Below, in pieces: positions 18,598 through 38,131 of a stretch of 64,000 nt of DNA. The notes beneath the pieces were generated by a model. It made no database searches. It saw nothing but the letters and a program-made list of their open reading frames with translations, and had not been told where the DNA came from. The DNA lies in the NCBI GenBank assembly GCA_000708835.1, contig DF237007.1, positions 197,291 to 261,290 on the forward strand. Reading direction: 5' to 3'. The DNA comes from Klebsormidium nitens (taxonomy: Eukaryota > Plantae > Klebsormidiophyceae). Numbering within the stretch: the first letter of the stretch is position 1; the number at the start of each line of letters is the position of its first letter. The position numbers and the translations under genes are program-made.

Positions 18598-20619
18598 TGC
18601 TGAAGATGCTCTCCCTGCAGCAAATGGACAATGTTGCCTGCTTCAGCAAGCCCAACCGCAGTTGAGGTGAACGTAAAACGGGATACTCGATGACAGTGAC
18701 ACCCTGACGAGGTAGGGACTGAAGATTACCACTCTGTCTCATGTGACACACTCCCGGGCTTCTGGAGGGTACCTGGCTGATCCACAAGCAACAAAGTATG
18801 GGAATTACAAAAGAAGGACTGCAGATATCAAAATTCCTTCCCATTGAACGCTCCCATGAAAAAACTCATCCCACAGGGGTCCAAACAGATGGGGTTTTTG
18901 GTCCATGTAACATCACATGACTCTGACACATTGTCTACTTGTCATCAGGACATGGGATGTTCTGCAATGATTGACGGGCTTGCAGGGCATACACAGTGGT
19001 ACAATTGTGGTACAACACTTCTTCACAACCAGCGGTCGTATGACGTTTCTCAACCCCTATGCGCATTCGGCTTTATGCAGAAGTTGGTTAAGAATCTATG
19101 CTGCACCAGAGCCGTTGGTTGAGTCATTTAATTGAAGCTGGAGCAGCATGCCTACTCAACCTGGATGCAGAACCCCTCCATAGAAGCAACACCACATTGT
19201 CAAATGAAAACTAACCTCTGCTTCCGAAGCCCAGCCCTGCTGCCTGACCCCTGTCCACCTTTCCCAAATGCTCGCAGCTTGTTTGAGCTGGAAGAACCAT
19301 TCTCAGCGGCAAGCTTCCCAATGCCGATGCCATGCTTACTGCAGACTAACCCAGCGCAGGAAAGACTCTGTCAGACCCACCTCCGTCCGCTCAAGTGCTA
19401 AATTCGCTGCAAGAAAAGCAGCTCAATGATCTCTGTACAGTGCTGCCAATGCCAAATCGCAAATGATGCCAATGGCGGATCATGTGTGTGTGTGACACTG
19501 AAGATCTGCAAAAGCCAATGCCAGCATTCAACTTCCAAGTTCAAAAATTTCTTGCTGTCTTGCTCTATTGAGGAACTACTAGAGGTGGAAGAGACAGGCC
19601 CGCCATATTACCCGAGGCTGAAGAGAATTTCTGGGGGGTGTGGAAAATTGGCCTTCCGGCCAATTTTCTCCACATATAGTGTCCATATGATGTCCATTTG
19701 ATGCTGCATATTTATAGGCAAGTTTGGTCTTGAGACAGCTGAGTGTTGGAATACCGACTCTACTGGCCGCCCGGTTCCCAAATAATAACAATATTACGTA
19801 TCTGAAGATCCATAAGCTGTGTGCTTATATAAGCTGTACTCTTGATTTTGGATGACGAAAGTTGCACTCAAAATTGCCTGCAACATGGTCATAGGTACCT
19901 ACCGGTATCACGAGCCCTGGTTGCCATTACTGGAAGTCGCCACTGGCCAGTCGTCCTGATCGCCGCCAGTCGTCTCTTTTGACAATCGGACGGCTCAGAC
20001 TTTACACGAGTATCGTATTACCGAAACCGGCAGCCGACGTCACGGCAAACCTGCCCATGAAGCAATTGTGGCTGTCCGATACGACTTTTTTGACTCTCGA
20101 CGGCTCAAAGTCAGCCTTTTTATTTCATTGAAACTTCGCCGACAACTCTCAGAGCGAACAGTTGCAGGACGATCGCAGAGACAGTCTCTTAACTAGACAT
20201 GCACACTCCCGCCGCCAGCGGCCGGGCGGCGGTACGAACGGGCATGGCATTTACGATCGTGGTTCGTAACCTGCACGACTCTAGCCGCACGTGATCGTTC
20301 GATTTTGTATTTGTCGCCTTCTACTTCGTCATCGGACGGATCACGTCTTGCATCCAATGACGTTCGATCTCAGGCCGGCTTCAATCGAAGTACGGTAATT
20401 GGCCAAGAATCAGTACGTACTGGTCGGTCCCATGCTCAGTATGGCAAGGGGCACATAGGAAGTAGCCGAACTTTTTCCGAACCGATGAAACGTCGGCGCA
20501 AGCCAGCGCAAGCGGTAGATACCGCGGAAAAGTTCGCAGGCTCAACGCGATAGATGGTACATACTTCACGGTACGTAAACTCCCCGAGGCAACTTAGCTC
20601 CCGGGAATGCCAACAAACA

Positions 20620-20716
20620 CTAAACCTAAGCTACATTGACGCGAGACCCTAACCCACACCCTAAGGCGTTCCGCCGCCACGGTGCCCCATCCACCCTAAC
20701 CCCCCGACCTAACCCC
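20620..20716 (+). repeat. Short cluster of degenerate telomere-like/telo-box motifs (ACCCTAA, ACCTAA)
   Basis: Three ACCCTAA and two ACCTAA within ~100 bp, ~600 bp upstream of the HEMC start. Confidence 0.45.
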
Positions 20717-21065
20717 ACCAAAGCCACTCGGTTGCTCGGATTGCTGGTGGCTCTGGCGTCGACAGGCATACGATTCCGAAAAAGTTCGGCTACTTTGTCC
20801 GTTTTGCCTCGGTATGACTCTGGTATTACTCCGACTCCGAGTCCCCTAACTATAACTGCTTCGATCTGCACTAGCTAAACCGTAATACGACACTCTATGC
20901 GCGCGCACACCTCCGCGCACATGCGGCCACGTTCCGACGCGCGGGCGCATTCACTGCATACCGTGGTAATATGCTCTTCAGTAGGATCCGATCAATCGAA
21001 GAGCTCCAAGCCGAGTGCCCCCTGCATCAACGTTCGACAACGCTAAATCTTATCCACAACTTCAT

Positions 21066-21105
21066 CCAATTTTATGCACGAAGCTACCTATAATAGAGCC
21101 TGGGC
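21066..21105 (+). promoter_or_regulatory. Possible HEMC core promoter (CCAAT, TATA-like CTATAATA, TGGGCC)
   Basis: Motifs lie 210-250 bp upstream of the HEMC ATG. Short motifs only; no transcript data. Confidence 0.25.
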
Positions 21106-21314
21106 CAGGCTGAGCTGGGCACTGGGCAGTTCAACTTCGAGCTGGAGGAGGAAGAACTTTCGAAGTCGGACGTACGAGGAAGCAACTTGAAGCGCCCCCA
21201 AAGTTCACTATTCGCAAGGGACCTCAGAAGGTTAGGAGTGAAGGCCGTACTTTTCAGGGGGTGAGGTTTTTAGGCCTTGGCAAATACCATTGTGTTTGTT
21301 GGCAAGGGTGCACA

Positions 21315-25963
<4,649 letters not shown>

Positions 25964-27000: not shown

Positions 27001-27366
27001 NNNNNNNNNNNNNNNNNNNNNNNNNNNNNNNNNNNNNNNNNNNNNNNNNNNNNNNNNNNNNNNNNNNNNNNNNNNNNNNNNNNNNNNNNNNNNNNNNNNN
27101 NNNNNNNNNNNNNNNNNNNNNNNNNNNNNNNNNNNNNNNNNNNNNNNNNNNNNNNNNNNNNNNNNNNNNNNNNNNNNNNNNNNNNNNNNNNNNNNNNNNN
27201 NNNNNNNNNNNNNNNNNNNNNNNNNNNNNNNNNNNNNNNNNNNNNNNNNNNNNNNNNNNNNNNNNNNNNNNNNNNNNNNNNNNNNNNNNNNNNNNNNNNN
27301 NNNNNNNNNNNNNNNNNNNNNNNNNNNNNNNNNNNNNNNNNNNNNNNNNNNNNNNNNNNNNNNNNA
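27001..27366. other. Assembly gap (366 N)
   Basis: Run of N. Confidence 1.
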
Positions 27367-27949: not shown

Positions 27950-28520
27950 ATATTTGTCCGAATTTTACCTCCCTTTATTCCGCGGAATATAAGGAGGGAA
28001 CAGTATTACATATATTACACGGTTTACGGTTGTTTCGTCTTCCTCCCTTTTCTCTCAGGGGTATACTACCCCGATTTCGGCCTTCCTCTTCCTCCCTTTA
28101 CTCCGCGGAATATAAGGAGGGAACCGAAACGGAGGAGTCCCGGTTTTGTGACTTAGATTTTTTTTGCAAGTTTCTCTCAGGGGTATACTACCCCGATTTC
28201 GGCCTTCCTCTTCCTCCATTTACTCCGCGGAATATAAGGAGGGAACCGAAACCGCGGAAACCCGGTTTTGTGACTTAGAAATTTTTTGCAAGTTTCTTCC
28301 AGGGGCATACGACCCCGATTTCGGCCTTCCTCTTCCTCCCTTCTCTCGCCGAAATTTCGGAGGGAACCGAAACCGCGGAAACCCGGTTTTGTGACTTAGA
28401 AATTTTTTGCAAGTTTCCTCCAGGGGCATACTACCCGGGTTTCGGCCCTTCCTCTTTCTCCCTTCTCTCGCTGAAATTTCGGAGGGAACCAAAACCGCGG
28501 AAACCCGGTTTTGCAACGTG
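27950..28520. repeat. Tandem array, ~121-bp period, 4-5 copies, immediately upstream of the KDZ transposase
   Basis: The core CCGCGGAATATAAGGAGGGAAC / CCGGTTTTGTGACTTAGA..TTTTTTGCAAGTTT recurs at ~27977, 28100, 28223, 28343 and 28464. Confidence 0.9.
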
Positions 28521-28828: not shown

Positions 28829-31800
28829 ATGAATCCGAGCAAGAAGCAGCGATCCGCTGATAAAGCGATAGCGCAGGACTCAGTCTCCATTGATTCCCTT
28901 GCAGCACCACTGACTCTGCTGGGCTTCGCCCTTTTATTGGACAGCATGAAGCTGTACCCGGCGTCCTTTCCGGAACGGCCCCACGTCATCGCATCAGTTA
29001 TAAATAGGGCACTCCCTCCCTCCGAGCAAGTGGGCCATGTGGCAGTGTTCAATATAATCCAGAAGCTCAAGACGCTAGAAGGACCGTCTGCCCTAGACGC
29101 TGCTGCGTGCTTAAAGCGTCCGTGTATACAACAACTCGCAGCAGAGGCAGACAGCCTGCACGTCGCAATTCCCCGCACAAATGTCTGTCTGAGATGCAAC
29201 ACACAGCTGCGCTGGGCTGACAGCCCACAGAGGCCATTCATCTTTCCTGAGTCCGGGAAACCAGCGCGTGGAATCGTGCATGACAAGGTGTGCAAAGACT
29301 GTGGGATTCTGTTCTCTGTGGGCTTCTACACATTACAGGCTTCCGGTGTCCGACGACCATACCCAGCATCAGCCGACCATGAGCGGTGGATCCAAGTGTC
29401 AGGCGAAACGTCGATCAGCAAAGGGCTTATGCGAGCACACGACCAGAACCTGTGAGTTTCCACGGTCCTGCTGCAAGTCTCCTGAGGTTCCTGGGTCCCC
29501 TTTTGCAGTGCACCTCATTATGTAGCTGCAAGACTTGCCTGCACTTGAAACCAGCGCACGTGCGCTGGGCGCATATATGGATTAGAAATTCTGCCTCGTC
29601 CTTCCTCCTTGACACTTGTATTACATCTCAATGTGCTCAAGCCCACAACCCCCTTTCAACAGGTACCACAACCACGTCACGTTCGCCGGCGCAGTCAGGG
29701 CGCACAATGACCTGTGGGGCCTCGATCGTTTCTCAGAGGCTCCTGAAGCTGCACTCGAGACAATGCGTTGGCGCCGTTCTCTGAGGGGCAGCCTGCACAG
29801 GGAGATTTTCGAAAGAACTTACCTCCAGTACTGGGCAATCAGGTTCTGTCAAGACGGTTGCCCTTCCCTGCTAGATGAAATTGATCTTCGCTGGCCCGTT
29901 GACCGCATCCTTAGTCTCCTCAATGACCCGATCTGGTGCCAGCTGAGAGACGAGGCCCTCGCACACAGCAAGCAGTGTAAGGATCCGCTCTGCGGCCAGT
30001 ACGATCATCTAGACGGCAATGCAAAGGTGTTTAGGGACTGCTGTCGGCAGAAGGACGTTGAGCAGTTCACCACTGCCATTGGCAGGGTTGTCAAAGGCTG
30101 TCCTAGCACGCCGGTCAAAGGGAAGAAGCTGTGTCAAGCGCACCTAGCAGCAGTCCACCTAGCTGAGCCAAACAGCGCAGGCGCGTCCGATGCGGCGGAG
30201 GGAGAGGCTGAGAGCACCGGGGCTGAGATAAATCTGATGACCGACAGCGATGACGAGCCTGATGAGCTAGACTTAGAAGAGACGCAGCCAGAGCAGCGCC
30301 AGAAAGAAACTGTCAGTGCTGCACGCGCAGCACCAGCAGGGCAGGCGTGGGACACAGAGACGGCGCCGGTGGCACTCCGCACGCGTGGAAAGCAGCGAGT
30401 CTTGCAGCAAGATGACATCTACGAGGTGGAGCGCATCGAGATGCACCGCATCAAGAACGGGGTGAGCTTTGCTTACTGTAACTGGTTGCATGGACAGGGC
30501 GTTTGTCTTTCCTTCCCATTCTTATCTTCACAAAAAACTGCGTGCCAGCTGAACCAGCGACGCCACCCTGGAGCTTCCTGAGCTGATCTGTGACCTATCC
30601 CAGGACTGTAGAACAATTTGCAGCACGCTGATTCACGGATGTTGTAGCCTGGCATATACTTTGACAAGCAAGCCTGTTTGAGGTATCTCTCTACCGCTGA
30701 CACATGTATCTTTGCGCACAGTGTAGTTCGTCATCAACGCTGACGTGAGATTTTCTTCAGGTACCCATCTACCTCGTCAAATGGAAGGGCTACCCTTCTA
30801 CGGAGAACACTTGGGAAACCGAAGAAAACTTAACTGCGGTTACGAGAGACGTCCTCGATGAATACTTGAATTCGCAGCCCCAAGGTAAGCAACGTCCGCG
30901 AATGTTCCAACGTAATTACGATCATCCAATAGCTGCATTTTGATCAAAACAAGGGACTGACCGACTACTCTTCAAGCTCCTGCTGCGTTGCAGTTGCTGC
31001 GTAAGCGCAACTTACATAGCCTCCGCTCCATAAGCACATTCTTCTTCTCATCGGAAGCACGGCTCCTTGGCTTTGGAAGCCCGTCCTTCGCCTAACCCCT
31101 TTCTCGGAGAGATCCACAGACTTTCCAACTCCAACTGAAATATCCGCCAGTTCAGCACCTGAATTATGCGCAAGACCACCACAGAATCTAATCCAACTGT
31201 GCGCTTACTTCCCTTTTACCCCCCGCACCTCCCGCCTCACATAACTCGACACCGCAGGTGATTTCTACACGAGGGACCGCAAGGACCTGGAACCTGACCC
31301 CGCTCCAGTGGACGACGCCACAGGCAGCGCGCCGACAAAGTCGAAGAAGGCGGTAGCATGCACCCCCCGTACAGCGTCTGACGGGCGCGGGGTTACGGCT
31401 GGTACGGTGGTGGCTTTCTGGGTGTGCGGATACATGTTCCCTCCATTGGAGCTCATCTTGTCAGAATCGACGACAATGGTGAGCAGCTACCTCTCTAGTC
31501 ATCTTTTATATATCCACCTAGGATCTCATATGCACGGGGTTTGGGCAGGTCTTGCAATCATAAACTGTTGACCAACACGACGCGGCTTCAGATGGTCCGC
31601 GAACCACTTGAATGACTTGCCAGGGCCCAATGAAAGGAGTGTGGGGTGGGGGGTGGGGAGGGAAGGTGGCAATGCACTTTCTTGTTGATAGACAGCGAAC
31701 GAAATGGTCCTCTTTTGATCCAGTCCGCAGACAGTTTGTAGCACAAGCGAAAAAGGCAGCACGCAAACAAAACCACGAGTTTATTGCGTCCATATTACTT

Positions 31801-32906
31801 TTGCAGGTGCATCATTACTTCCTACAGCTGTTTGCGTTCGCAAAGATGCCACGCTTTGTCGGGATGGACGACATGTGCCACTGGGCACGTTTCGCAGCCA
31901 GTGGTGACCGACCGACGCTTTGCGCAAAAACAAGGGAGTTCGTCCAGAACGTCACCAAAGTCGGTGAGTGAACCAACAGAAGTTGAACAACGACACTGAT
32001 CTGTGACTTTACGGTTGTCATTCTGCGAGTACACCTAGTTCCAATGTAGCGCGGACCCTAACACGCTGCTGGCACGCCTAGTCTCCGACCAATAACAGCC
32101 AGTGTCTGCGACAGCCATTTCCTGCAGCTCCTGTGGGGGGTTTGTCGCCCTTCTCCAGCTTTCCAACCTCTCTGCTTTTGGTGCCCCTAGCATGGCATGC
32201 AGAACAACGGGCCATACGTTCTCACTGAACCTACCCTCAATCTGTCCCGCAGTCGACAAGTTTCACTTCAAGAAAAACCATGTCGGGAGATAGTATGCTG
32301 AAAACACAAATCCGTACAAGCACGAGGAACCGGAGAACGCAAACATGTCGGTTTGCGAGCAGCCCTTTAAGTGGTTCGGCGGGTTTAAGAAGACGATGAG
32401 GTAAGACACTGGTCTGGACAGCTGCACCAGAAAGCATGCGAGCAGTTTGCTGGGCGCAGATTGTGTGCTATACCATCTCGAAGTATTCTTGCACGAACGC
32501 GAAGGCGACTGGGTAAGGATACATGCGTCAGCACCATGCGTGCACAAGCCATGCGTCAACATCAGCAAGTTTCGTTCATGATTGGCTGTTGCGCAATGTT
32601 GCTTAGACAGAGGCTCGCTCAGGTATTACGACATCCTGGGACTTACGCCTCAAGTGGCGCGATGTCCGAGCTCTCCCTAAAGCAAACTACTTCACGTGGT
32701 GCAGGTACATGAATGAGCACCGTTTCAAGTTTCTTCTTCTAGTTGTGACAAAACTAGACCATATTCGCCGAGATGGACTCCTAGAAGCCAAGATCAGGGC
32801 AATTGAAGCTGCACGCGCCAGGTCCACACCGACGTCAGTCACGGCAGCCCTGCTACGACAGGTGAGACGGATCCTAGTCCATGTCCATCTCCCTGCCGAG
32901 TTCTGA
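28829..32906 (+). mobile_element. KDZ (Kyakuja-Dileera-Zisupton) superfamily transposase gene: CxC5-like, CxC6-like, chromodomain and KDZ core; one in-frame TAG
   Basis: Phase-consistent exons 28829-29451, 29663-30461, 30761-30884, 31258-31478, 31807-31963, 32253-32400 and 32705-32906. Cys clusters CLRC...CKDC and HLDGN..CC..GC..P..KKLC..H. Chromodomain IYEVERI...YLVKWKGYPSTENTWETEENL. Core motifs TAG.V.AFWVCG..ELILSES, GMDDMCH, VDKFH..NH, NMSVCEQ.F.W..GFK, MNE.RF.FLL. TAG at 32291-32293. Confidence 0.8.
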
Positions 32907-33068: not shown

Positions 33069-34910
33069 CTACACAGGCTTTTGTCTGGTCGGCCTTTTGG
33101 AAACGTACCTTGCTGACTGCCCCGCCGGGCGCTTGTGGTAATACTCGGGAAGAAACTGTTGAATTGTCATGCGCAGTCGCGACAACTTGTTCGTCAGTGC
33201 CACGTACTCTGCCTCAGTATCCGGGCGATTCTTGTGGAAAACGGGATGAGAAATCTTGCACGGGGGCTTCTTCTCTTTGTCGTTCACGTATCCAAAGCAG
33301 TGCTATCCGTCGTTTTCAGCAGAGGATGCGTATGCGAACAACTCGTCGATGTCAGGCACGTTCCCAAATTTGCGCGTCTTCCCTACTTCTGTCCTCCCGA
33401 TCGTTTCTTCACGGAAGTCCAGGAACACTCGTCTCAGTTGCTTGTCCATGACGCCCTGCAACCAGGACGTTCCATCAGGATCTCAAAAGCACGGCTGCTA
33501 CAACAAGAAGCTCCGACATACACAGCGAACTCCGTATGATCTCCGATAAGCCCCATACTGTCTTTCTCTACAATGATATCAAACTCACCAGATAACGCGA
33601 CCCATCGTCGTCGGAAGCCTCCGAGTCTGAGTCGTCAGCGTCATCATCCTTCGTTCCTGGAAGGTCCCATTTCAGTACCTCTGAGCAGACTTTCGTTACC
33701 GCGCTGTCGTTCTCAAAATACACTCGTTGCTTCGTGGTCAGATTGACGTAGTTCCAAGCATAGCGAACGCTGTCTTCACTGACTTCGAGCACTGCGTCGG
33801 GGAAGACCAGGTTCTCCGGGTAAGTCGGGTCAGACACGAGTTCCAGGACGTGGAAAATCGCAGCAGTTTGAAGCGCCTCCCCCTTCGTCTTTGCAATGAG
33901 ACCTGGGACACGGTATCACACATTAGTGATTGCATCCAATGAAATTCAGGGCCACAAACGGAAATGCGTTTCTCCCCTCGCTCAATCTCATGCCATCTTC
34001 AGTCGACCAGTGTAAGCAGCTGTGAAACTTACCCGCCTTGTGGAGCTGGTTCTTGTCGTATAGCTTTCGCAAGACCGCCTGGATGTTGTTGAAGCCTTCT
34101 GCGTAGACTTCTTTTGCACGCCCGCAAAGAATCCATTCTCTTCTGACGACCCCTCCAAACGTGTCGTGCGTCAGCTGCCAGATTCGGAAGAACCACTGCG
34201 TCCGAGAAAAGAGATAGCCATTAACATCAGGGAACGAACGCACAGTAGTGCAGACGAGCGCACACGAGATCGACAAACGTTCAAGCTACAACGTTGCAGA
34301 TCAGCGTTGATCAACAGAATGGCGACATCTAGCATAAAAGGAGCAGACGTGTGTCATACCGTCTGGACTTTCTCGTCGTCCTCGGCCACCAGGTTGAAAT
34401 CCGCGGAGATGTCCAAGTCCTCTGCAAGATTTTGCACTGAATTAGAAAGCTTCCTCTCTGCAGGAAGCTCGGGAGCAGACTGTCGAGACATCAACACTCG
34501 TTCACAACGGGGATTCCTCCTGTCCACCTTCAACCTTCTGTACAGGTGAGTCAGTGTCGCAAATTACAACGCTCACCGAATGCAGGAAACACAGGCTCCG
34601 GAAACACTGTAGTCCACCGGTTTAGGAGACCGTCGTTTGGTGTCTTTGACACCTCCCTCATCAACGGTTCCGGCTGGGTATAACCGGTAATGGGAACGTG
34701 CGTGAAGGGGCAGGATCTTTCTTCCTGGTCGCCAACCAATTCGCGAGTCCATTGGCTGCCTCCTTTCAATTGTAATGCTCGGATCCTGTCGCTGTTGCCT
34801 TTCTTGTAGTTGTACAGCGTCTCAAAGAACTGCTGCCCCTCCTCAAAGAACAGGAAGCCGCTGTGGTCTTTTGCAGCAAACAGGAGCTGGAATAGTCGCT
34901 CAAATGTAAC
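33069..34910 (-). CDS. Spliced DUF3987 (YfjI)-like putative NTPase gene, convergent with the KDZ transposase; one in-frame TAG; 5' exons unresolved (possibly to ~36640)
   Basis: Phase-consistent exons 34910-34577, 34421-34360, 34195-34033, 33902-33589 and 33455-33109. Motifs VTFERL..LL...GFLFFEEG..FF..LYNYK, ITGYTQPE, NDGLLNRW..VFP, AKTKGEALQTAAIFHVLE, EVSEDSVRYAWNYV. TAG at 33305-33303 with the reading frame continuing beyond it. Confidence 0.65.
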
Positions 34911-37282
34911 CTGCACTCAAACAGATAGTTTGTTTTGTGCAGACTGATGGCTGACAGCAGGGGTAGTGACTCAGCAAGATTATGCGATGCAGTGCCGAGG
35001 ACAGCACTCAACTAGGTGCATTCTATTCATCAGCAATCTTCGAGTAGCAGAAGAAGCAATCAGAACTTGTAGATACACCGTAAGTTCAGCCTTGATTGAA
35101 CATTTCTGAGATGAGATCAGCTCTTTCAAGCCTTGCAAAGTGAGACTGGCTGGCTAAATGCTGTCCTGTTATCGTTCCTCCCTCTTGTACACGATCTACA
35201 CTACAGCGACAAATGCAATGATCCTGCATAATAACGGCTTATCAAGCATGTCTTATCGTCGCACAATTCTGCATGCAAATGAAAAACGAGATGCAACCAG
35301 AGCAAACCCCAGGCTAACCAATTGCAGATAAAAGCCTGAGATGCTGGACGATTCAGATACCGTGCTCAAAATCCTATACCATGAACCATCATTCGAGACA
35401 TTCCGAGCCCAAACCGACCAGACGAATAAAGACCAAACGTGCACACGAGTCTTGGAATAGAGGAGCAACATGCACAGGTAATCATTGTGAATGCAATATG
35501 CATCCGGTTATAGCTAGCTGGAAAAGAAATACATCTATACAAGTCATTCGAACTTCGCCTTTATTCAATCCTCCTTATGCAAGATGGATGCACAGGCTTA
35601 CCGCTCCCGGTGACAAACGAACCATATGCAGAATAAACGCACCGGTTCGAGAAACATACGTCCATTGCAAGAGCGACGAACTCGGATTCGACCAGATTAC
35701 GCATACATACGTTTCGACCATTCCAAAATCTGGTACCCTAAACCTTTTGATCATATGTACCGTACTAAGCTCGCATATAGCAAGCAAATGCAGCTTTCAA
35801 ACTTGTGCATTTCCTAGTGAACCAATTGGTTCACTAAGTTGCGGGTTTCAGTCTGCAGTGTTATACCCTGATATTCAATTGTTTTATTAGCTTTATAACG
35901 GTCCAGACGTTGCGAGCGTCAGCTAGGTACAAAACTTCGGGGCCCAAGTCATCATTGAACTAGCGCTGCAGCTGAGCCCTGCCTGCAGATGCGACACTGT
36001 ACTAAGCATCTTCAGCAAGAATGCATGTACAGCCTCAAGTTCACATCAAATGCACGTTCCATCCACTCAAACAGCTAGATTTTGATAACCCCAAGTAACT
36101 CTTCGTCCTCCAAGTCTGCTCGGCGCGCTTGCTAGTGATTGTATCTTGGCTCAAACCCCTACTCACCATTGTCTCGCCTTTCAACGACGACCAGTATTTG
36201 CAGCAACTCAAGTAAACCTTTCTATAACGGCAACTCAAGTCTGCAGATGGTAAAGCAAGCGGGGCGTCCAAGTAACCCGTTCGTGAATTCGCTCAAATCT
36301 ACGCGTTCGCTAACCATAAATAAAAGCAAACTCAACGTGCCGCGGCAGCTAAGCTCGCTTGGGCCCGGTTTACAAACCCTCCAGGAGCCTCCATTGTTCC
36401 ATATCGCCAAAGAAATTCCAGCCAAAGAAAGTGACACTAAGATACATTTCGCTAGAACATCCCTGGCAAGCCCAATTCGCCCATCCACGTGGATCCGAAG
36501 GTGGCGCGCCGTCGTATCTTGCCCGTTTCCTGACAGATCTTGCGCCGCGCTTGTTCGTCGTGCCTGACACGAGCAGAATACCGCGTCAGGAGAGACTTCA
36601 CATCGTTTCCTTTTGGAATCGTTTCTGGGTTCCGATATGACACGCCTTCCGTGCAGTGAGAGAAAATTCAGAATACTTAGAAAACGCCTGTTGCTGCTGG
36701 AAAAACGAGGGCTGCATGTTGAACCTCAAAATTAAGGTTTCCGTTTAAAGGCGGATCGTTGGTTACCTCTCCATGAAAACGACAAGCAAGGACGCCTTGG
36801 CACAAAAAGCGATGACTATTTGAGTGGGTTGCCCCCACAGAAAAGGAGAAAGGAAAACTTTAAATTGACCACTTTGAAAGCAGAACACCGACAACCGGTA
36901 GCAAAGCAGTGAGCAAGTTCCCTGGTACTTCGGTAACTTCAGCCTGTCCTATGAGCGCCCCCATCTTCGGTCCTGTCTTGTTTGCTCAACAAACAACTCC
37001 AGGACGATAATCTTTACTGCGCTGCCCACCAATTGTTGCCTGACTGATGCACGGTTGAGAGCAGATACTTCAACAAACCATCGACCCAGGAGCAACGCGG
37101 AAAGAGTGAGATTCTTGAAGAACAGACTCGAGGAAGCAGGACGACTCGTGTTTTGACACTGCTGTCAAAAGCGCATCAAACCCAGTTTCTGGCGACCCTT
37201 GTCCTGTCAAATAAAAGACCAACAAATTAACGACCGACAGCATTCGCAAGCCAAGCCTCCTCCAAATCACGCCCCAACAAGC

Positions 37283-38131
37283 TCACCTGAACGTGCACGC
37301 AATTGGGTTCAAGCACCCCATCTTCCCACAAAAGAACATGCAGTCCACATTGCGCCCATCCTCCCGCGCTTTCTCGAGTACCTCGTCCCAATACTCCTGC
37401 AGTTCCTGCCACCAGTCCGGAACCCCCCGCGTGTGGAACGGGTTGTAACAGCTGTTCCGTCCCATCTCATCAAAGCACATGCCGCAGTATCCTCCCCCCT
37501 CAGGAGGCGGAAGAACGGTGCCCCGCGCCCCCGCATTACACGCCATGGTCCAAAACACGTCGACTATATTGGTAAGGTGATGCGGCCCCCCCTCGATGAA
37601 CGTGGGTTCCGTCGAGGAAAGCTCCCTTAGCTGATTGGCTAAGGCTAGAGGATCTAGACAGAGGAACTTTTCCACGCGGCCCCGCACGAGCGCCTCCGCA
37701 TTGCGGCTGTCCCACCATGTAACGCCGTATTGGCCCCCCGGAACCAGCTCATCCTTCGGAACCTGCGCCGACGGGCTCGCACCCCCCCTTCGGTCTGGGC
37801 CATCTGCGTACGCATTCACCCCCCTATTCCAGTATGGGGGCAGCGGAGAATCTGGGCTTGGGGGGCTTTGCCCATCGCTCAGCAGAGGGGATTTGAAAAT
37901 CACAGGAGTGGGAGTTATGTAGAAACAGCCGGTTGCTGCAGCTTGCAGCATAGAGGAAGCGAGGGCCTGAATCTCGAGTTGGTCGCGGGCGGCCTCCTCC
38001 CAGTCTGCCGACGGCGATGGCTTGAGGCGCTCTTCTTTTGGGGGGGGGCTGTCACTAAAGAGAATAGTAGAGGGCAGGCTGGCACTCCTGCCGAAGCGTG
38101 AGCGCAACGGGGAGGCCTTCAAAGGGGACAT
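37283..38131 (-). CDS. 282-aa protein of unknown function, copy 2 (intact paralog of 13709-14557)
   Basis: Same length, no indels, about 26 mostly conservative substitutions by manual count. All Cys/His residues and the upstream acceptor are kept. Confidence 0.8.
   Translation of the reverse strand: MSPLKASPLRSRFGRSASLPSTILFSDSPPPKEERLKPSPSADWEEAARDQLEIQALASSMLQAAATGCFYITPTPVIFKSPLLSDGQSPPSPDSPLPPYWNRGVNAYADGPDRRGGASPSAQVPKDELVPGGQYGVTWWDSRNAEALVRGRVEKFLCLDPLALANQLRELSSTEPTFIEGGPHHLTNIVDVFWTMACNAGARGTVLPPPEGGGYCGMCFDEMGRNSCYNPFHTRGVPDWWQELQEYWDEVLEKAREDGRNVDCMFFCGKMGCLNPIACTFR

Follow-up and report, generated by a model that had tools for sequence, protein, structure and literature searches.

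Chromatin-guided integration is well documented for long terminal repeat (LTR) retrotransposons and far less so for cut-and-paste DNA transposons. In retrotransposons, chromodomains steer integration towards heterochromatin (Gao et al. 2008, PMC2259100, as cited in PMC6839031), and a chromodomain has been predicted in the integrases of adintoviruses (PMC8502044). For the CxC domains of the Kyakuja-Dileera-Zisupton (KDZ) transposons, a role in recognising DNA or proteins of chromatin has been proposed (Iyer et al. 2014, as reported in PMC12062965), and an 8-bp target-site duplication (TSD) is reported for Dileera and Zisupton (PMC12730594). Here we describe a transposase gene with a chromodomain in a stretch of 64,000 nt of the green alga Klebsormidium nitens (contig DF237007.1, positions 197,291-261,290 of the forward strand), which we call the window and whose positions are used as coordinates throughout. 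In our judgement this stretch probably holds a single copy, inactivated recently, from an old family of chromodomain-bearing, KDZ-like (Dileera-like) DNA transposons that comprises several lineages.

Elements of the Dileera clade of KDZ (CxC5, CxC6 and KDZ core) resemble the K. nitens family in their N-terminal CxC5-like cluster, in a DDE, RNase H-like core with motifs of the DGN, G-x-D-x-x-C, D-x-F-H...H...C and C-E-Q type, and in being large elements with accessory genes; the nearest clusters in the ESM Atlas are also CxC5, CxC6 and KDZ clusters. The K. nitens family differs in falling below the Pfam thresholds for all three domains, in its green algal hosts, in a cargo of DUF3987 NTPase and primase genes instead of TET/JBP, and in that neither termini nor the 8-bp TSD (PMC12730594) were found. 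It also differs in having a chromodomain, joined by a PHD finger in one relative (P0019), that is predicted to be embedded between the first and second catalytic Asp (D1 and D2). Chromoviruses (Ty3/Gypsy) likewise combine a DDE-fold integration enzyme with an HP1-like chromodomain, but theirs is appended to the C-terminus of a retroviral-type integrase, in an element that uses reverse transcription, whereas here it would be an insertion inside a cut-and-paste-type core, with no reverse transcriptase (RT) or LTRs. No RT or rve match was obtained in the gene, and the likeness to chromoviruses is one of functional analogy only. Polinton/Maverick and adintovirus integrases belong to DNA elements with a DDE integrase bearing a chromodomain (PMC8502044), but these are retroviral-type integrases of virus-like elements with polymerase and capsid genes, and fold subfamily, domain position and element type all differ. 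Searches of full-text literature returned no description of KDZ, Kyakuja or Zisupton with a chromodomain, although a prior mention in the paper that defined KDZ (Iyer et al. 2014, PNAS) is possible.

The gene and its chromodomain

The gene model was built on the + strand by three-frame reading and manual splicing. The transposase gene, at 28829-32906 (+), has seven exons with 757 codons and a stop, and one in-frame TAG at 32291-32293; its six introns are 211-373 nt each, all GT..AG and of compatible phase. Residues 1-654 of the model are 100% identical to P0025 (KFL_000580360), an annotated K. nitens protein that is named 'hypothetical protein' at NCBI and 'Chromo domain-containing protein' at UniProt. 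The public annotation of KFL_000580360, made independently, has the same six upstream exon junctions and ends at the TAG. A first-pass annotation had proposed seven exons in phase with about 757 codons, and this was borne out by the GT-AG borders of all six introns and by the identity to KFL_000580360. The order that it had given, from Cys clusters through an acidic linker and a chromodomain to KDZ-like motifs, was also recovered in the spliced model, where a CxC5-like region is followed by a second Cys cluster, the acidic linker, the chromodomain and the KDZ-like motifs. Its proposal that the chromodomain is fused to the transposase held as well, given that the same introns occur in the K. 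nitens paralogs and that a chromo-like segment is present in the intronless metagenome relative P0019. Exon 7, downstream of the in-frame stop, is kept in P0026, P0019 and P0017 and in unannotated DNA of the paralog locus L003.

Pfam PF00385 matched residues 461-511 of P0025 over the whole profile (E 1.2e-15, 57.6 bits, cut-off 25.1), and when single exons were searched, Chromo alone was matched. The closest solved chromodomains are those of Arabidopsis LHP1 (8xag, 2.9e-12) and Drosophila HP1 (1kna, 1e-11). In alignments to 1kna and 8xag, Y461, W482 and Y485 fall on the three cage positions of HP1/LHP1, which are Y24, W45 and Y48 in the numbering of HP1. Intron 2 interrupts the domain between ...HRIKNG and VPIYLVKWKGY, and the earlier expectation of an intron-split chromodomain with all three cage aromatics intact was thus confirmed. 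These results support the view that the gene encodes an integral HP1-like chromodomain with an intact aromatic cage.

Pfam Chromo matches eight of the nine aligned family members (E up to 1). In an AlphaFold2 (AF2) model of the paralog P0026, the chromodomain superposed on HP1 1kna with a template-modelling (TM) score of 0.85 and a root-mean-square deviation of 1.6 A. The cage of P0026 has Trp at position 1 and Phe at position 3, and the specificity of the reader may differ between lineages of the family. A basic motif, A-L-R-T-R-G-K-Q-R (30372-30398, residues 445-453), stands directly before the chromodomain, and its R-T-R is kept in most family members, metagenome fragments included. It could serve as a nuclear localisation signal; a more speculative option is a histone-tail-like peptide next to the reader.

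Predicted catalytic fold and probable affinity to KDZ

The AF2 model of P0026 was made from a 28-row alignment (mean pLDDT 60, pTM 0.56), and its best regions are residues 170-300, 400-450, 490-550 and 620-660. Exhaustive comparison of the model with VIA-align returned two classes of matches, chromodomains and DDE enzymes. Among the latter, the transposase Hermes matched residues 201-649 with Z 8.1, the integrase cores of PFV, ASV, RSV, MMTV, HIV, MVV and HTLV matched with Z 5.7-7.7, and further matches were to Tn5, ISCth4, TnsB, IstA, MuA, piggyBac and P element transposase. About 25 integrase or transposase cores were matched altogether, and nearly all of these alignments span P0026 residues ~229-653, on both sides of the chromodomain (393-448). 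The DDE fold was visible in the exhaustive VIA search alone; chromodomain matches dominated the whole-model Foldseek and Atlas shape searches.

In the model, the Asp of the DGN motif (P0026 D240, corresponding to D325 in the window) lies on strand 236-243, the Asp of the GMD motif (D543, window D610) comes directly after strand 539-542, and the Glu of the CEQ motif (E610, window E677) is within helix 608-623. This is the usual D-D-E layout, and D325, D610 and E677 are the predicted catalytic triad. The DGN Asp is invariant in 9/9 aligned members, and the second Asp and the Glu are kept in every member that reaches those motifs. The cluster first described as CxC6-like contains the invariant DGN motif, and with it the predicted first catalytic Asp. 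Because the DDE alignments span both sides of the chromodomain and the DGN Asp lies upstream of it, the chromodomain is predicted to be inside the catalytic core and not before it. The first-pass annotation had placed the chromodomain between the Cys clusters and the core, and this placement has to be given up; according to the model, the loop that follows the first catalytic strand, between D1 and D2, would hold the second Cys cluster and the acidic linker as well as the chromodomain. Disordered stretches flank the inserted part (P0026 299-386 and 449-492).

The same annotation had named KDZ, CxC5 and CxC6 domains, of which the KDZ-like character stood, through Atlas neighbours and the predicted fold, but the Pfam thresholds were not reached. 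The KDZ profile (PF18758) had no match in the window protein or in the K. nitens paralogs. P0019, which is homologous to the window protein (BLASTP 3.5e-44 over residues 245-714), matched profile positions 119-206 (E 4.2e-5), and its score of 23.8 bits is below the cut-off of 26.6. KDZ is also the only Pfam transposase family that was matched in the family. CxC5 (PF18718) was found below threshold in three members (E 0.003-0.005, 17.4-18 bits versus a cut-off of 26.9), and the CxC5-like region of the window covers profile positions 4-115 of 117 with E 0.005, whereas CxC6 (PF18721) gave no match even at E 10. The profile comparison suggested by the earlier reading exceeded the threshold for Chromo, fell short of it for CxC5 and, through P0019, for KDZ, and gave nothing for CxC6.

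Comparisons with the ESM Atlas agreed with an affinity to KDZ. For the C-terminal 177 residues of P0026, 32/40 of the nearest named clusters are KDZ (feature score 0.96), and in structure searches the C-terminal part of this protein reached TM 0.66-0.75 to CxC5/CxC6/KDZ clusters. For residues 95-380 of P0025, 20/40 neighbours are CxC5 clusters (score 0.95, TM 0.65-0.74). Feature scores to CxC6 or CxC5+CxC6 clusters were 0.82-0.91, even with Pfam CxC6 unmatched. The Dileera-type clusters of the Atlas (CxC6 97%, CxC5 90%) are mostly without a Pfam KDZ match themselves, so that a missing PF18758 match would be typical of the Dileera clade. Indirect evidence therefore points to a divergent KDZ-like, Dileera-type DDE transposase, the link to KDZ being drawn from the sub-threshold profile matches, the language-model and structure neighbours, and the predicted RNase H-like fold. 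A word-indexed protein search with residues 255-744 of P0019 as query returned PHD proteins only.

The family, its elements and the window copy

Exon 2, used as the query of an exhaustive HMMER search through 1.84 billion proteins, matched only 22. Six are K. nitens paralogs with 48-69% identity (P0001, P0023, P0024, P0025, P0026 and P0027), and the others include one protein each from Chlamydomonas sp. UWO241 and C. eustigma, as well as metagenome fragments; a repeat-rich protein among the matches, P0020, was set aside as spurious. Word-indexed protein searches that started from P0001 and from the family alignment recovered nothing beyond the six K. nitens paralogs, and metagenome scans yielded two compost contigs that matched in the chromodomain only. 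All six intron positions are common to the paralogs (four other paralog loci), and blastn between the loci aligns exons only and not introns. Among P0001, P0023 and P0024, dN/dS is 0.09-0.11 at dS 0.7-1.4, and dS is saturated against the window copy; these values argue for old lineages under selection and not for recent copies. Chromo occurs together with the same N-terminal fold in two Atlas clusters. The first has 93 members and includes Porifera; the second, of 109 members, also has zf-C2H2 and matches the C-terminal core as well. This suggests that the design is probably widespread and merely unnamed. The metagenome relative P0019 (L007 450-2684) is intronless, and in it a PHD finger precedes a chromo-like segment whose cage is degenerate. 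The gene that comes after it, at L007 3133-3930, is convergent and belongs to the MT-A70 (N6-adenine methyltransferase) family.

A convergent gene lies directly downstream of the transposase gene in 5/5 other paralog loci (L001-L004 and L008). It is annotated as DUF3987 in four of these five; the partner in L008 has no Pfam match and does not align to the others. L003 also carries a UL52-type primase gene, a third gene is found at the same place in L002 and L008, and L003 and L001 are collinear over ~11 kb. In the window, the corresponding gene is a remnant (Table 1) that lies at an annotated gene, 33303-36169, none of whose pieces alone gives a Pfam match; the N-terminal part of the DUF3987-like gene and the primase gene are absent. 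The element at L001 (DF237680) is interrupted at 20140-23789 by ~3.6 kb that are absent from L003. The gene call in which this interruption falls (20812 onward) has a piggyBac-type DDE_Tnp_1_7 domain, and the inserted DNA probably represents a nested transposon.

Just 5' of the transposase ATG in the window is a tandem array whose units carry a near-perfect palindrome centred on CCGCGG, with an extra copy of the motif at 27968-28000. Tandem arrays of unrelated sequence are found in the same position in L001 (9994-10111), L003 (1-301) and L002 (95-244), and two small paralog contigs end in or beside their 5' array. The array is a candidate for subterminal repeats or for sites that the transposase binds. 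When inverted repeats and copies of the motif were searched for, no right-hand partner of the array appeared within 64 kb. The earlier proposal to define termini and TSD from sibling copies was not successful, as blastn between loci and motif searches gave no close copy, element ends, terminal inverted repeat (TIR) or TSD; because only exons align between loci, the ends of the element could not be delimited. The left border may be unassembled, in a gap (run of N) at 27002-27366 that lies ~0.7 kb upstream of the array in an AT-rich block at 26-28 kb (GC 0.385). The window copy is flanked by two host genes, which encode porphobilinogen deaminase and an SNF2 protein. An annotated gene of 318 residues at 36452-38131 (-), with a Pro/Ser-rich start and a Cys/His-rich end, had no Pfam match and no counterpart in the paralog loci.

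The first-pass annotation had counted a single lesion in the window copy, the TAG at 32291. This stop is real and in frame, but the neighbouring change of TGC to TAT is probably a second lesion. At 32288-32296 the paralogs read CGG TGG TGC (Arg-Trp-Cys) and the window AGA TAG TAT, so that 5/9 bases differ from the paralog consensus, four of them as G-to-A or C-to-T transitions, and the stop is accompanied by the loss of the conserved Cys of the D-K-F-H...H...W-C motif. Read-through of the TAG and an alternative splice that skips it were both considered and rejected, since the paralog DNA has TGG at this codon and the frame runs through conserved residues before and after it. Otherwise the copy is little damaged, with five private changes at columns where four other lineages agree, which is fewer than in the intact P0026. 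The annotated product ends at the TAG, without E677, and consequently cannot be catalytic. The window copy is inactivated and its element probably truncated, and judged from its sequence it cannot move by itself.

Table 1. Features of the transposase gene and its surroundings in the window
Feature	Position	Strand	Remark
Tandem array, 122-bp unit, 3.8 copies, just 5' of transposase ATG	28049-28513	.	
Exon 1: residues 1-207 plus 2 nt; N-terminal region and CxC5-like Cys cluster	28829-29451	+	Pfam CxC5 sub-threshold; ESM Atlas CxC5 clusters 0.95
Exon 2: helical region, invariant DGN motif, second Cys cluster, acidic linker, first third of chromodomain	29663-30461	+	
Predicted catalytic D325 (DGN), exon 2	30012-30014	+	
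Cage residue Y461, exon 2	30420-30422	+	
Intron 2, splits chromodomain	30462-30760	+	
Exon 3: remainder of chromodomain	30761-30884	+	Pfam Chromo on exon 3 alone 2.2e-12
Cage residues W482 and Y485, exon 3	30782-30784 (W482), 30791-30793 (Y485)	+	
Exon 4: linker and core beta-hairpin (TAGT...CG...ELILSES motif)	31258-31478	+	
Exon 5: GMDDMC motif, predicted second catalytic Asp D610 at 31867-31869	31807-31963	+	
Exon 6: DKFH...H...[W-C] motif; CEQ motif with predicted catalytic E677 at 32357-32359	32253-32400	+	
Lesion TAG TAT (paralogs TGG TGC, conserved Trp-Cys)	32291-32296	+	
Exon 7: conserved C-terminal helix (MN..RF.FLL...KLD), frame still open past stop	32705-32906	+	
DUF3987-like NTPase gene remnant, C-terminal two thirds, convergent	33132-34931	-	tblastn up to 69% identity, E 3e-54 to paralog loci

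Possible function, alternative explanations and meaning

How might such a transposase work? The N-terminal CxC5-like zinc module would probably bind the subterminal repeats of the element, and the RNase H-like core would carry D325, D610 and E677. The chromodomain, of HP1/LHP1 type, would be suspended by a pair of flexible linkers within the loop that follows the first catalytic strand. In the mechanism that we hold most likely, it would bind nucleosomes marked by H3K9me or H3K27me. Such binding could tether the transpososome to repressed chromatin and bring new insertions into safe sites, as chromovirus integrases do. Targeting guided by methylated H3 is, by this analogy, a reasonable inference. 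We put forward much more tentatively a wider idea, which may well prove wrong, that there is a widespread clade of cut-and-paste DDE transposases, in green algae and, to judge from the Atlas clusters that combine Chromo with CxC5/KDZ-like folds, probably in sponges and other animals, in which a methyl-lysine reader within the catalytic domain couples target capture (or donor access) to a histone mark.

Several observations weigh against a chromodomain-bearing, KDZ-like transposon family. Throughout the family, KDZ, CxC5 and CxC6 fall short of the Pfam gathering score. Both the P0026 model (mean pLDDT 60) and its Z scores of 6-8 are middling, and the placement of the triad is only predicted. 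The third cage Tyr is replaced by Cys (KWKGC) in P0001, P0023 and P0024 (loci L004, L001 and L003), which indicates that methyl-lysine reading is not uniformly kept. No TIRs, TSD or near-identical sibling copy were found in the window, the paralog loci or the metagenome scans, so that we infer mobility from copy number and linked cargo only. The insertion is between two host genes in a region that is not obviously repeat-rich, and the paralogs, being old and under purifying selection, would also be compatible with host genes. Among 24 probable K. nitens RNA runs, which hold almost none of the words of the stretch, the contigs of four were compared and none lies on the gene; this is no proof of silence.

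If the missing RNA contigs are taken at face value, the chromodomain exons could belong to a separate gene and the fusion be an artefact of the gene model. This explanation is close to refuted, given that exon order and intron positions are identical in four other paralog loci, that independent annotation (KFL_000580360) yields the same model, that the intronless P0019 holds a chromo-like segment at the same place within one open reading frame, and that the frame is maintained across all junctions. A false lead in the KDZ label, with a catalytic domain that comes from another DDE superfamily (hAT-, MULE- or IS66-like), seems very improbable to us. All three Pfam profiles stay below threshold, the best solved match is the hAT transposase Hermes, and MULE and IS66 clusters appear at TM 0.39-0.43; however, we know of no solved KDZ structure, and as none is among the solved matches, Hermes is merely the nearest solved fold. 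Among the Atlas neighbours, by features as well as by structure, KDZ, CxC5 and CxC6 clusters prevail by far, and no other Pfam transposase family was matched.

Perhaps the genes are instead host chromatin genes domesticated from a KDZ transposase, for example to bind or cut methylated chromatin, with the window gene a pseudogenised paralog. Strong purifying selection (dN/dS ~0.1) over a long divergence with saturated dS, conserved introns, and the failure to find near-identical copies, TIRs or TSDs are all in keeping with this, but copies are located at unrelated sites and always have the same convergent partner gene, sometimes with a primase gene. Moreover, small contigs end at the 5' arrays, as repeats do, the distribution is patchy, the metagenome relative has a different cargo (MT-A70), and members with sequence long enough to include the motifs retain the predicted D-D-E residues. 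We consider domestication unlikely on these grounds. More room must be left, although still a minor share, for a transposon in which the chromodomain has no role in target choice: it could reach the element's own silenced, H3K9- or H3K27-methylated donor copies for excision, or recruit or mimic heterochromatin proteins for self-regulation. The same chromodomain evidence applies here, and a reader predicted inside the core on flexible linkers would suit any contact with nucleosomes. Ciliates provide a case in which domesticated transposases carry out excision under the guidance of methyl marks that chromodomain proteins read. The evidence is compatible with donor as well as with target reading; the best-documented precedent for a chromodomain in a transposable element is target choice (PMC2259100, as cited in PMC6839031).

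The window copy is dead, and the value of the finding is in the family and not in this locus; the mechanism is drawn from analogy. If the proposed targeting is true, DNA transposons would have arrived independently at the same safe-haven strategy, and the family would offer a natural chromatin-addressed DNA integration enzyme, a compact scaffold for integration addressed by histone marks. A set of K. nitens 'Chromo domain-containing proteins' would be re-labelled as transposase genes of a transposon family that carries primase and helicase genes, and this would be relevant to counts of chromatin regulators in K. nitens, an early-diverging streptophyte.

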